In this document: positions 5,103-10,924 of the stretch, piece by piece
Position numbering within the stretch: position 1 is the stretch's first letter
Layout of the letters: each line of letters opens with the position of its first letter
Assembly (NCBI RefSeq): GCF_032062105.1
Contig: NW_026931035.1
Coordinates: 372,001-436,000 of the forward strand
Reading direction: 5' to 3'
Origin: Saccostrea cucullata
Taxonomy: Eukaryota
Length of the DNA stretch: 64,000 nucleotides
Translations under genes and position numbers: made by a program
The notes under the pieces: model-generated
What the model saw: only the letters and a program-made list of their open reading frames with translations
Told to the model about the DNA's origin: nothing
Databases searched by the model: none

Positions 5103-8100
5103 TTAAGAACCAATTCAATTTATAAGTGCATTCACTTAAAATAAATTTAAAAATGACTAATTACTTGTGATAAATCAATGCAAATTCCCTCAATAAAATT
5201 TAATATGTGAATGTTTTTCTCAATCACATTAACAATATCTGTAAATTGCTTTTTATCAATTTAAAATATTCCAGGAATATTTTAAGTGAAATAATCATTT
5301 TTGATATTATCAGGTGCATAATAGTGTATAAACAAATGCATCATGAAACAGTGGGTTTTGACTACGAAATCAGTGTTTTCCCTTCTTTCCATAGAGTTAA
5401 AGATCAGTTTTAGCAGGCTAGGGGCTGAGGTTTATGAACAGAATCTCTGTTGACCTTACAACAAATTTTTATTTCAAAGCAGCATTTTTGTCAATATTGA
5501 AGTGGTCAATTTGGCCGGTAGCCATTTTTTTGGCCAAAAAAAATAGTCTTGTTTCCTGCTAACTGACCTACCCTATTTTTTGCACCCACCCTTAAGTTTT
5601 TTTCCCCTTAGTTTTAGGGGAAAAAATTGGAAATTTCATGTGTCAAAAAAAAAAAAAAATTAAATATGGACTTTAACAAAATTCCATGCGAGTTGTGCAT
5701 CAAAAGACATGGAATTTCATTTTAAAAGATAAAACTGACCTTTAATAATTTTCCTTCCAGCCTACCCTATTTTTTTCAGGCTGGTAGCAGTAAAACAAGA
5801 CCATTATTTTTTTGCCTTAGGGAAAACACTGGAATTTATCTCAAACATTTGGATTCTTGTTTATATCACATAGTACCCATCAATACGCGAGTTTCAAGAT
5901 TGTAACTCTCCTGCGATAGAGGCGCAAAAAGTATCCATTTCAGCATGGAGGTGGGACCATGTATATAAACGTGCATAAATAAATGAACGATGATTACGGC
6001 TTTTAAAATTTATTTAATGTTATAGAAAGATAAAGATGTTAAGCAGTGATGCATTTTATGATTTTATTAAGCTCAACTGTGTTTATTTATTAATCTACTT
6101 TCAATAATAGGGTACTTGAAAACGAAATAAACATCGTGGTCTTTATAAAAGTAAAAGATTTTCTTGACTGTACAAACATTCTCTAAAAAGTTAGCGGGTT
6201 TTTTTAAGTTATAATAGGTAAAAAATCAATATTTTATTTAAATTGTCGACATGTAATGATCAGATTCATTTTTACTGTATTTATTAGAGGTCCATATAGC
6301 TCTTCCCTCGTCTGAAAAGTCTCACATCCACAGAATTTTCTTTTTTGTTCCGATTTTTTTGCTTTAAAAAATGACACCTTTACTTTAATTCAGTTATTCT
6401 CGAGTTGAACAATGCATCCTTACAATTATATAATGAAGAAAAACTAGTATATCGATGATGCGATATGTACAATAATAAATATCTGTCCCACCTGTTTGTT
6501 TACGCGGCAACCAAATTCCCCTCCTCAACGAAAGAGCGCACCAAGGGAGATAATCTCGAAACTTGCGTATTGCCTGCCAAGAAAACTGACATTAAAAAAA
6601 AAAAATTGGCAAAAAAGCCACAAACTTGCTCGATTTGAATTTTCTGCAATCCAATGTAGCAAAATCAAATCAAGCTAGTTGATCACCTGTACAGATAACT
6701 AAAAGGGGTTGGAAGTTGACGCAGATTGGTTAAAAATGTGTCTTGAAATAGGGAGTGAAAAATAGTTGATTGATCAATGCTGGAAAGTGGAGAAATTCTC
6801 CCCAACAGTGGACAAAAATTCTTGCATCATCTTGTGTCGTAAATTGTATACTTTTTGCAGTACAGGATCTGTTGCGTTATGGTCAAAGACTGATATAGAA
6901 AAACATTACACTACAGTTCTGCAGTTAATCCAGTAATAGCAAGTTCTCCAAAAGGTATGACACTCATCAGTGAGAGTTCTAAAAGCAAAGCTACGATGAC
7001 GAAGAAAAAATTTGGACTAACTAAACAAAGCTACTTAAAGTATTTAAATAAAGATATGAATGTAAATCCAAATTTGCAGCTGAATGTAGTGATTGTATGA
7101 GTGTGTATTACATCACAGATGTACAGAATTTTGGCTAGGATCTACGAGTACCATGATTATAAACAAAGTTGTACGTCCCAACAGTCGTAGGTCAACATTT
7201 ATTCTGCGTCATTCTTTGCATTATTATGCATTACCTGTGTGTTATTTACATGTATTAGAAAAATTTTCTTCAAGACTCGCCAAGCAGCAGTTTATTGCTT
7301 TGGTAGAAACTGTTCTTTTCGGATGATAACAACAATTCGTCAATCGCGACATGAGACTGAGTTCATGGGGGCTGCCATATTGTAAATTAGATAACTCGTA
7401 CATAGTATGACGTCAACTTGTACCTTTACTGAGTCGTAAAATAAAAGGAAGGTAATTTTGTCATTCGAACTGTGGACACTCCTCAAACTAGTTACTTGAT
7501 ACTCTATCTCCTTAAAAATTACTTCAATTTTCACAAATTGCAGATATAAAACGTTAACAATCCCCTCTCTCTCTCTCTGATAACTGATAAAGTGCAGTCA
7601 CGAGTAACTATAGATCTATGTAGATTGATTGAAATACTTCCTTACTGAAACTTTATACATTTTATTTTTATTGCTTATCATTGAAAAAAAAATTGTCAAA
7701 TCTCAATGTGTAAAAGGAATTTTTGTATGTAGTTAAGACAATTCATTTTAGATTATTGAAGAATCCATGTACAAACCAGAAAAATTGCACAAATGAAAAA
7801 CGAACCCATTAACGAGTTGGTCACAAGAAAGAAAAGATGGCATCGTGTCAAAGAAATCTTTTATTTCTTAGAGAAAATAATTAATGCTAAAATCATGGGT
7901 CTTATGATATAAAATATTTCTTATGTAGTTTCTTCAATGTTCTAAACCAGGATAGCGTTTTACAAAATTTAGGCGATTTAACCTTTTTGAAAACCATCAC
8001 ATGAAGAGTAATAACTTTATAGTTCGCAGAAATCAATGTATACCACCTTTGTTATTTGCACTACGGTTAGGATAATAACCTGATAAGAATGGAGGCGTAC

Positions 8101-8270
8101 AAGGCGAGGACAATCCCCCGCTCTGAGAAAAGGCATTTCTCAATTCTAAAAGATCATGAAAAGTCATATTTTTCAAAATTATATTGTTTATATCATTTTA
8201 ATATTTTATTAATAATTTATTTTTCACTCATGTTTTTAAGATATGTGTAAACAAAATAGAAAAAGCTTCA

Positions 8271-8347
8271 CGTACACAATGATTCGAACTCTCTCCATGT
8301 AGCGCAGCGTTTGGTCCAAGGCCGACCGCTTTAACCACTACGCTACG
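8271..8347 (-). pseudogene. tRNA-like sequence (Pol III A/B boxes) inside MITE
   Basis: Minus strand tagcgtagtggttaaagc (A box) ... gagttcgaatc (B box); no proper cloverleaf. Confidence 0.45.
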
Positions 8348-8370
8348 AAGTAATTTACATTGTCGACTTC

Positions 8371-9168
8371 CACCGTGCCATAGCGTTACTATGATGCAAT
8401 TATTCCGTAACGTATGATGAAACGATTCTTTATGGAGTTTTTACATGGAGATTTGACCAAGGTAAGTTAATGTCGTATTTGTATGCCTTAAACGCAAAAT
8501 AGCCCTAATTGTGTTAGCCCTTGCATTATAGGAATGACACAGGCATCTGTTGACATAATGGACAATGTCCAGTTATGCGCCATTTTCTTAAACACTTTGC
8601 ATTTTCATAATAGAGAGGCTAAAAAGTTCGATTTATTCATAGAACTTTTTTCCTAATCATGTTACAAGATCAGCTACAAGTTTACCATAATGAAAATTCG
8701 TTGTTTTTCCATTACACTCTTGAATTGTGATGAAAATATTTATTTAATCGCTTTTAACATGGGTTTTTAGAAGTAACGTATGATGCAACGATTCCCATCA
8801 TCAGTAACGTGCGATGCAACTATTCTTTAACAATCGTATTATTAGACCAATATGTTGGATTTCTTTACTAGGACACGTTTCAAAGTAGGGTAATAAAATT
8901 ACTCATTGCTTTCTTTTTATCACAGAATACCAAATGGTTAAGAAAAAAGCAAAACTTGACTAAAGAACGGCTAAAAGAAAAAAGTACAGCAAGAATAACG
9001 TCATTTCATCCCCTTACCCAACTCCGAAAAGAAGAAAATTTCTACTCCATTTAAATCCAAAAATTGACATGTTGATGCCCCAAACAGAAACACTGTAAAA
9101 ACTCCATAAGGAATCCTTTCAACATACGTTACGGAATAACTGCATCACAGTAACGCTATGGCAAGGTG
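8371..9168 (+). mobile_element. Non-autonomous TIR element copy 1 (CAC...GTG termini; Transib-like)
   Basis: 798 bp, ~75-bp imperfect TIRs beginning caccgtgccatagcgttact; internal repeats of gtaacgtatgatgcaac. Confidence 0.85.
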
Positions 9169-9563
9169 ACTAAATATGACATTTTTTTAAAACGTGCTAA
9201 TTTCGGCGAATTTTTATTTTTACCTTAATGAGGGTATTCAGACACACATAGAAAAACACATAATACACAAAATAAACTATCCTGTAACCAAGCGCCTATG
9301 ATCTCAAATTTAAAAACAATTTTAGGAGAGTGTAATAAATCATCAAACTTGGCAACAAATATATAAAATTAAGTGTTCTCTGAATACATGCCATAATACC
9401 TCAGCTTCGCAGGTTAAAGAAAACTGGGAAAATCAAGCGATAGACCCTAATCACAATTTCTTTTTTTATTTATACAAAATTTTATTCGCAAATAAATTAA
9501 AGTAAACTGGGCTTGGGCAACAGGCAAAGTCTATTTTGGCTCTCTCCCTGCTAATGCCTTTAC

Positions 9564-10362
9564 CACCGTGCCATAGCGTTCCCATGATGCAGTTATTCCG
9601 TAACGTATGTTGAAAGGATTCCTTATGGAGTTTTTACAGTGTTTCTGTTTGGGGCATCAACATGTCAATTTTTGGATTTAAATGGAGTAGAAAAATTTCT
9701 TCTTTTCGGAGTTGGGTAAGGGGATGAAATGACGTTATTCTTGCTGTACTTTTTTCTTTTAGCCGTTCTTTAGTCAAGTTTTGCTTTTTTCTTAACCATT
9801 TGGTATTCTGTGATAAAAAGAAAGCAATGAGTAATTTTATTACCCTACTTTGAAACGTGTCCTAGTAAAGAAATCCAACATATTGGTCTAATAATACGAT
9901 TGTTAAAGAATAGTTGCATCGCACGTTACTGATGATGGGAATCGTTGCATCATACGTTACTTCTAAAAACCCATGTTAAAAGCGATTAAATAAATATTTT
10001 CATCACAATTCTAGAGTGAAATGGAAAAACAACGAATTTTCATTATGGTAAACTTGAAGCTGATCTTGTAATATGATTAGGAAAAAAGTTCTATGAATAA
10101 ATCGAACTTTTTAGCCTCTCTATTATGAAAATGCAAAGTGTTTAAGAAAACGGCGCATTACTGGGCATTGTCCGTTATGTCAACAGATGCCTGTGCCATT
10201 CCTATAATGCAACGGCTAACACAATTAGGGCTATTTTGCGTTTAAGGCATACAAATACGACATTAACTTACCTTGGTCAAATCTCCATGTAAAAACTCCA
10301 TAAGGAATCGTTTCATCATACGTTACGGAATAATTGCATCATAGTAACGCTATGGCACGGTG
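9564..10362 (-). mobile_element. Non-autonomous TIR element copy 2, inverted relative to copy 1
   Basis: 799 bp, near-identical reverse complement of 8371-9168. Confidence 0.85.
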
Positions 10363-10924
10363 ACTTCTGTCAGTGTGACTTAAATGAACAGGTTTGTTGA
10401 GGCGTACATTTTTTTCAGAAATTTTCGATTTTCATACAGAATGGGTTCAGATTCCATTTTTTGGACGAATGAAATAGATTTCGCATTTACGTTTCCATCA
10501 TTTGAGGCTTGACCCATTCATGTTCAAAATTCATTTTTTTATAGCTCTAGTAAACCCATTTTCCACTAAATATGTTTAACTCTCAACTTTGAAATAAAGA
10601 TTATCAAATAATAAGTCGTTCAGTAAAAAAAAATGATAAAATGTTTTGAAGATGACATTACCGAGAACATGATTTTAGAAAAAAAATATAACTTTTCTGT
10701 GAATTTCGAAAATTGAGAAATATTTTGCCTCATAGCGGGGGATTGTCCACGCCTTATACGCCCTCTTTTTTTATACTATTATATTGCAAAAAAATAAGAA
10801 ACCCCCAAAATCTTATTTCAAGATCGTTTATTTTCAGTCAATATTGTGAGTGTGTCAGATAATTTAAATCATAAAATTTAAATCATCAGACATATTTCCA
10901 TGACATTTCCCGATGACATTGTTT

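Follow-up and report, generated by a model that had tools for sequence, protein, structure and literature searches.

In a 64,000-nt stretch of the Saccostrea cucullata genome (the window, by which we mean the whole stretch), positions 8371-10362 are best explained, taken as a whole, as a copy of a composite DNA transposon that is 2 kb long and non-autonomous: two defective transposon copies in inverted orientation that bracket 395 bp of foreign DNA. We put the probability of this explanation at about 0.8. It is based on the structure of the composite, on its mobility as a unit, on a target-site duplication (TSD) of 5 bp, on the derivation of its arms from an autonomous element, and on the fold of that element's transposase as predicted by structure models. 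We read and repeat-scanned positions 8000-10800. We also searched the oyster's own genome with the 798-bp unit that forms each arm, with the cargo between the arms, and with a 28-nt tip pattern, which gave 74 termini.

Structure and spread of the composite

The composite (1,992 bp) consists of unit 1 (8371-9168, 798 bp), a spacer of 395 bp (9169-9563), and unit 2 (9564-10362, 799 bp). The repeat scan finds the units inverted and 98% identical, in two blocks: 8371-9041/9692-10362 (671 nt, 98%) and 9039-9168/9564-9693 (130 nt, 97%). Each unit also has its own 75-bp terminal inverted repeats (TIRs): 8371-8445 and 9094-9168 are 92% identical, and 9564-9638 and 10288-10362 are 93% identical. In other words, two complete units with ends of their own (CACC.../...GGTG) flank unrelated DNA. 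ACTTC is present at 8366-8370 and at 10363-10367, which is to say at the outer ends only, and the inner flanks (ACTAA and TTTAC) match neither one another nor the outer flanks. A first-pass annotation of this DNA had described the two inverted units, the outer-only ACTTC, and the unmatched inner flanks, and our reading and repeat scan confirm all three. It had also reported substitutions near the inner tips. These are present in both units (CACCTTG...CTGTGATG in unit 1 and ...GCGTTCCCATG in unit 2) and are common to every composite copy in the genome, while the tip pattern search found CACCGTG at all outer ends. The features, by window position, are:

8085-8365, no strand: interrupted host repeat, left part (arm 8085-8156; paralogues 77-84% identical)
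8366-8370, no strand: left copy of the TSD, ACTTC, 5 bp (the pentamer is single in paralogous copies of the host repeat)
8371-9168, plus strand: unit 1, read as a 798-bp non-autonomous deletion derivative with the transposase-proximal end joined to a 75-bp terminus (alignment to the autonomous copy)
8371-8830, plus strand: outer arm region, corresponding to the 460-bp TIR of the autonomous element; starts CACCGTGCCATAGCG (repeat scan and comparison with the autonomous copy)
8407-8428, 8773-8794, and 8804-8825, within the outer arm region: 22-bp motif, three copies (0.01 copies expected in shuffles)
8934-9105, plus strand: decayed remnant of the first ~58 transposase codons (ATG at 8934; stop after nine codons)
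9094-9168, minus strand: inner 75-bp terminus of unit 1, CACCTTG..., with a single 22-bp motif (repeat scan, tip search, and motif count)
9169-9563, no strand: cargo, 395 bp, unrelated to the element family (genome search; no match to the autonomous copy)
9171-9300, plus strand: cargo part 1, a single arm of a ~290-bp foldback repeat, running from its loop to its outer end (849 first-look candidates)
9303-9549, plus strand: cargo part 2, low-copy DNA (80% identical to C7758:160355-160595)
9564-10362, minus strand: unit 2, 799 bp, inverted and 98% identical to unit 1; its inner terminus, 9564-9638, reads CACCGTGCCATAGCGTTCCC
10363-10367, no strand: right copy of the TSD, ACTTC (sequence reading)
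10368-10771, no strand: interrupted host repeat, right part (arm 10700-10771; paralogues 85-90% identical)

Evidence that the composite is mobile comes from its other copies. The genome search found the full unit-cargo-unit structure on C5597, C15377, C8374, and C13149 as well, and a decayed and partly deleted copy (~87% identity) is on C19775. Over the whole composite, the window copy is 99% identical to C5597 and 97-98% identical to the C15377 group (i.e., C15377, C8374, and C13149), whose flanks are 98-99.7% alike and which we therefore count as one locus. This gives four independent loci with four different TSDs, each perfect, 5 bp long, and at the outer ends only: ACTTC in the window, ATTAT on C5597, ATATA in the C15377 group, and TTCTA on C19775. 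The inner flanks are constant. These comparisons support the view that the unit-cargo-unit has moved as one body at least four times in the S. cucullata genome. Also, among the 74 termini, both inner-tip variants occur only inside composites. Their fixed position relative to the cargo in all copies points to a composite that arose one time and was then amplified.

The first-pass annotation had asked for the TSD lengths of solo copies. Across the family members of which both ends could be read, we find 5 bp at 17 of the 17 insertion sites examined, including those of the autonomous copy and of a 791-bp solo derivative, unlike the 798-bp unit, on C11978 (TSD TAACC). The odds of a 5-bp flank match by chance are about 1 in 1000. 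The target sites are AT-rich and share no fixed sequence.

The composite splits a host repeat of ~690 bp, whose 72-nt inverted arms (8085-8156/10700-10771), resembling those of MITEs (miniature transposable elements with inverted repeats), lie on either side of it, as the first-pass annotation had said. The repeat is abundant: a genome search gave more than 1000 first-look candidates for it, and ~40 paralogues were scored for the left part. We searched with the two halves separately (8080-8370 on the left and 10363-10775 on the right) and judged empty-site paralogues from the match coordinates. On C9378, C8221, C3845, C21296, and C7805, the two half matches share a strand, and their overlap is exactly 5 bases; on C15927 and C15857, it is 6 bases. 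So it appears that in intact paralogues the halves are contiguous, with one shared pentamer and without the 395-bp spacer. Because of this, the 1,992 bp plus one ACTTC in the window is, judging from paralogues rather than alleles, a single insertion. Together with the four loci, these empty sites uphold the earlier claim that the pair and its cargo transposed as one, using the outer ends and duplicating 5 bp. (ARAGORN found no tRNA gene in 7900-10900, though by eye the minus strand at 8290-8360 resembles a tRNA.)

The cargo does not belong to the element family: no part of it matches the autonomous element. Its positions 3-132 cover a single arm, loop to outer tip, of a ~290-bp foldback repeat that is abundant (849 first-look candidates, 92-95% identity) and has two inverted arms of ~130 bp about 24 bp apart. 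An example of this repeat is L041:1342-1629. Many reads from other copies of the foldback repeat break off at 9300. Cargo positions 135-381 are low-copy DNA and are 80% identical to C7758:160355-160595, where the small repeat is absent. This makeup (half a foldback repeat plus low-copy DNA) agrees with the first-pass claim of captured host DNA and fits ordinary genomic DNA that was trapped between two insertions. We considered C7758 as the donor of the cargo. Given identity of only 80% over positions 135-381 and the lack of family termini nearby, we consider it a paralogue instead.

The autonomous partner and its transposase

A single, apparently intact autonomous copy of the element lies at C20105:13006-19901. 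It is 6,896 bp long, has 460-bp TIRs that are 95% identical, and is flanked by the TSD TTATC. (Its sequence is in two pieces, L063:4007-10000 and L016:1-2236.) It contains two convergent open reading frames (ORFs), which encode a C2H2 zinc-finger protein of 258 amino acids and a long protein of 1,264 amino acids, counted from an internal TTG in a stop-free open frame of 1,391 amino acids. The ATG of the long ORF and its first ~58 codons (the frame reads MVKKKAKLD...) are inside the arm that is common to all of the non-autonomous copies. The counterpart of this start in the window, an ATG at 8934, opens a frame that is stopped after nine codons.

Positions 1-735 of the window unit align to 6896-6161 of the autonomous element, its transposase-proximal end, with 92% identity. 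At about position 733, the coding sequence of the unit gives way to the 75-bp inverted terminus, and the two are joined over the shared stretch TG(T/C)AAAAA. Such a junction is typical of internal deletions mediated by microhomology, and we take the 798-bp unit to be a deletion derivative of this kind from the 6.9-kb element. Two other family members also include this end of the autonomous element, over 967 bp in L011 and 1,325 bp in L012. Given these longer ends and the shared arm with its ORF start, the non-autonomous elements derive from the coding element, and the gene is not a chance passenger. Neither arm of the composite supplies a transposase. Since both keep just a decayed 5' remnant of the gene, the composite must be mobilised in trans.

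Judging from the translated genome, the long protein is a member of a large and diverse transposase family: it has at least 50 further matches in the genome (28-47% identity), many of them with open frames of 1,300-1,500 amino acids. We rejected two 3.8-kb family members, L061 and L062, as autonomous elements because they have no ORF of 150 amino acids or more. Their middles of 1-2.5 kb (L061:1707-4239 and L062:1604-4010) do not match the autonomous element and may be captured or nested DNA. We also noticed, from coordinates only, another two family termini, separated by 6.1 kb (C10477:210727-216850), with the tips CACCGTT and CACCTTG. Since the best protein matches do not include this pair, it probably lacks coding sequence or contains a nested insertion.

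What type of transposase is this? The first-pass annotation had assigned the element to the Transib/RAG-like group and had expected a Transib/RAG1-like autonomous partner. The partner exists, and its modelled core is P-like. In Pfam searches, the long ORF has a YqaJ domain only. Neither the long ORF nor its homologues have a RAG1 or Transib hit, and they have no THAP hit either; what the element does have is a C2H2 gene apart from the long ORF. The TNP-like RNase H N-terminal domain (PF21787) is sub-threshold in 2 of 13 homologues. Pfam searches with the N-terminal parts of ten homologues gave nothing relevant, and a sequence-profile search against solved structures gave no hit. A word-based homology search returned 29 relatives, of which the named ones are from bivalves (Pinctada, Mercenaria, and Mytilus) and all are uncharacterised.

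Structure models were built from 13-sequence alignments. An AlphaFold model of the C-terminal 690 residues (predicted local distance difference test, or pLDDT, of 69) matches the Drosophila P element transposase (6p5a_A) with Z = 21.6 and a root-mean-square deviation of 3.3 Å over 282 aligned residues. The other scores for this model are 7.2 for HzTransib, 6.3 for Hermes, 6.2 for RAG1, and 6.0 for BbRAGL. Foldseek also matches the P element transposase (E = 4e-4). A model of residues 95-1264 (1,170 residues, pLDDT of 73) matches 6p5a_A with Z = 24.1, and the alignment spans model residues 30-1161. Across the models, the scores are 7.2-10.7 for HzTransib, 6.2-10.0 for RAG1, and 6.0-8.0 for BbRAGL. 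With Z of 21.6-24.1 for the P transposase versus roughly 6-11 for the Transib and RAG-like proteins, the original assignment does not hold.

In the models, a lambda-exonuclease/YqaJ domain appears to be inserted in the catalytic core. Model residues 228-446 match lambda exonuclease with Z = 15. An invariant LCADAKK (with D152, in ORF numbering from the TTG) is predicted to be on a strand N-terminal to the exonuclease domain, and the remainder of the RNase H fold, with an invariant DGQW (D693) and the region DCSH...FSEE, is predicted to be C-terminal to it. Candidate catalytic residues, in the same numbering, are D152, D693, and an E near 1120 for the DDE core, and D437, E463, and K465 for the exonuclease. 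As to the GTP-binding insertion domain of the P superfamily, the stretch that runs from the second D to the E is long here and, in the model, helical.

The predicted RNase H domain is of the P/THAP9 type, but the 7-8-bp TSD and the THAP domain of the P superfamily are lacking. For these two reasons, we describe the transposase as P-like in its predicted mechanism and do not place it in P sensu stricto. Conversely, the 5-bp TSD and the CAC termini are as in Transib and RAG-like elements, which we regard as a resemblance only, but the partner does not have a Transib/RAG1-type core. We found no description, in the papers that we searched, of a transposase with a P-like core and a built-in lambda-type exonuclease.

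A homologue from Pinctada imbricata (50% identity) is within a 7.5-kb element that has inverted arms of ~520 bp (94-99% identity), tips of CACCGCGTG, and flanks that share the pentamer TATTT. So more than one copy combines a transposase of this type with long TIRs, tips that read CACC, and a TSD of 5 bp. Also, a 7,707-bp metagenome contig from the Joint Genome Institute (L071) encodes a 43%-identical homologue (P0006) that faces a small C2H2 gene. We found no TIRs within this contig, which is probably invertebrate DNA in an environmental sample.

Proposed origin and other explanations

We propose that the composite formed as follows. First, a 6.9-kb element would have lost its interior, so that ~733 bp of the transposase-proximal end became joined to a 75-bp terminus at a microhomology. 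Second, two such 798-bp units would have landed head-to-head, about 395 bp apart, in a donor locus and trapped the host DNA between them. Third, the family's transposase, supplied in trans, would have paired the two outer ends and excised the 2-kb unit. Finally, the composite would have reinserted elsewhere with a 5-bp target duplication. One feature, the intact inner termini, suggests that there were two insertions.

The preference for the outer ends may be explained by the 22-bp motif. In the autonomous element, each 460-bp TIR has three copies of this motif in the same sense (at positions 37, 404, and 435; 0.01 copies are expected in shuffles). Each outer end of the composite is a full 460-bp TIR with three motifs, while each inner end has one motif and the tip substitutions. 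Because the outer ends are full and the inner ends are reduced, we propose that the transposase pairs the outer ends. The asymmetry in the motifs, the many head-to-head duplications in the family, and the lack of a solo 798-bp unit also suggest that efficient transposition needs two full-length ends, which would be supplied by the two inverted units.

Several points weigh against our explanation. First, there is no allelic empty site. The unique flanks occur once in the assembly, which has one haplotype of the locus, and the depth of short reads and Logan contigs is dominated by paralogues, with no bridge across the locus. (The joints from 8352 to 10410 in reads stem from other copies of the host repeat, not from an allele of the window locus.) Second, none of the 74 termini belongs to a solo 798-bp unit in this assembly, and inner-type termini are confined to composites; in a classical composite transposon, the arms also exist and move as solo elements. 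Third, a search of the genome for a donor of 9169-9563, which the first-pass annotation had hoped to find, turned up none, and the best relative of the cargo appears to be the 80%-identical one on C7758. Fourth, the autonomous copy is single, and the activity of its enzyme is presumed. Fifth, the P-like call comes from models of moderate confidence (pLDDT of 69-73), the Pfam models for P elements are sub-threshold, and the TSD is 5 bp rather than the 7-8 bp of P and Galileo. Finally, an inverted-duplication process clearly operates in this element family.

This last point leads to the best of the alternatives, although we consider it unlikely: that the composite is a single element with long TIRs (of the 2-TIR type, as in Galileo or foldback elements) that arose by inverted duplication of one end, and that the cargo is merely its middle. 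Three family members, each with a 5-bp TSD, are two abutting and unequal head-to-head copies of the transposase-proximal end with nothing between them (L011, C19238:416800-418424; L012, C21045:69596-71595; and L014, C10485:175296-176866), a structure that suggests strand switching or a hairpin in the course of repair. Most of the other non-autonomous members are head-to-head duplications of the same end as well, without inner termini. The absence of solo units would also be expected. Furthermore, the arms seem to homogenise, as unit 2 of C5597 is nearer to unit 1 than to its window counterpart, and in Galileo's 2-TIR elements (1.7-2.2 kb) the TIRs grow through duplication and inversion of internal sequence (PMC3573991). 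On the other hand, the inverted symmetry stops precisely where two complete 75-bp termini lie, both facing away from the middle, and a random strand-switch breakpoint would not fall there. The middle is asymmetric and is built of unrelated repeats. And the inner and outer termini (92% identical) diverged before the arms did (97-98%). So we prefer the explanation in which two complete units bracket trapped DNA.

The two remaining alternatives are very improbable. A non-autonomous pair of the Transib/RAG type, with ends like recombination signal sequences, would account for the 5-bp TSD and for CACCGTG, which is one base off CACAGTG, and RAG1 and HzTransib are among the weak structural matches, but this idea is already largely refuted: the arms include the 5' coding part of a gene with a core that is modelled as P-like, there is no RAG1 or Transib hit in Pfam, and the ends of the element with the Pinctada homologue are alike in kind. 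It is just as improbable that this is not one mobile unit at all, whether because the assembly is faulty, because the two units inserted independently, or because a local inversion took place between two insertions; the unbridged locus and the single haplotype would allow it, but the same structure is present on seven contigs at four loci, neither unit has a TSD of its own, and the host repeat is contiguous in paralogues. We rejected a local inversion specifically because it predicts GAAGT at an inner flank, where we see ACTAA and TTTAC.

Comparison with known systems

The nearest parallels in animals are the 2-TIR elements of Galileo and the KolobokP elements of bivalves. Galileo, a member of the P superfamily in Drosophila, has TIRs of 0.3-1.2 kb, a 7-bp TSD, and 2-TIR derivatives of 1.7-2.2 kb (PMC3573991; PMC3688188). 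Our family resembles it in its modelled P-type core, in its very long TIRs, and in its ~2-kb non-autonomous copies that are nearly all inverted arms. However, Galileo combines a THAP domain with a TSD of 7 bp, whereas our family has a 5-bp TSD, no THAP hit in our Pfam searches, an exonuclease modelled in the core, and a separate C2H2 gene. Also, unlike Galileo's 2-TIR copies, the window element keeps complete inner termini and carries foreign cargo.

The first-pass annotation had compared the composite to Tn10. The architecture does fit: as in composites of the Tn10/Tn5 type and in MITE-flanked composites in bacteria, unrelated DNA lies between two inverted units, transposition uses the outer ends, and only these ends are flanked by the TSD. 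The comparison fails in that the arms of Tn10 and Tn5 (IS10 and IS50) encode the transposase, whereas here neither arm does, as both are defective, and the host is an animal.

Other composite-like transposons are known from bivalves. KolobokP elements have arms that are direct repeats, encode a His-Me nuclease, and spread partly by unequal crossover (Kojima & Bao 2022, PMC9587614). Like our family, they have long terminal repeats with short TIRs of their own, which can act as separate non-autonomous units. But the arms of the composite are inverted rather than direct, and KolobokP belongs to the Kolobok superfamily. As for Transib, ProtoRAG, and RAG-like elements, the likeness consists of the 5-bp TSD, the CAC... 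termini, and a distantly related core of the RNase H type. The differences are in the fold (Z of 7-11, as against 22-24 for P) and in the ends, which here are 460 bp with three 22-bp motifs.

In maize Ac/Ds macrotransposons and in the transposing elements of Drosophila that are flanked by foldback (FB) elements, two nearby elements of the same family mobilise the intervening DNA via their distal ends. These are mostly single experimental events. In contrast, the composite in S. cucullata became a small family, with at least four insertions.

Taken together, the features of this family may represent an undescribed lineage of animal transposons at the level of a superfamily: a P-type DDE core that is split by an exonuclease, a C2H2 gene as its partner, TIRs of great length, termini that read CACC, and a TSD of 5 bp. 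A need for two full-length ends would favour duplications and composites in this lineage and would make it a regular carrier of host DNA. This is a tentative suggestion, to which we give slightly less than even odds. In any case, the composite links a group of non-autonomous elements with a type of transposase about which little is known and which, according to the models, has a P-like core and a built-in lambda-type exonuclease.

CAC termini and a 5-bp TSD are not proof of kinship with Transib or RAG, as here these hallmarks go with what is predicted to be a P-type enzyme. The composite gives no link to RAG. This bears on the mining of invertebrate genomes for the ancestors of RAG and on the classification of repeats by their ends alone. 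Finally, we seem to have a natural case, in an animal, of two defective transposon copies that trapped host DNA and spread with it as a small family, which would be a route for moving host sequence.

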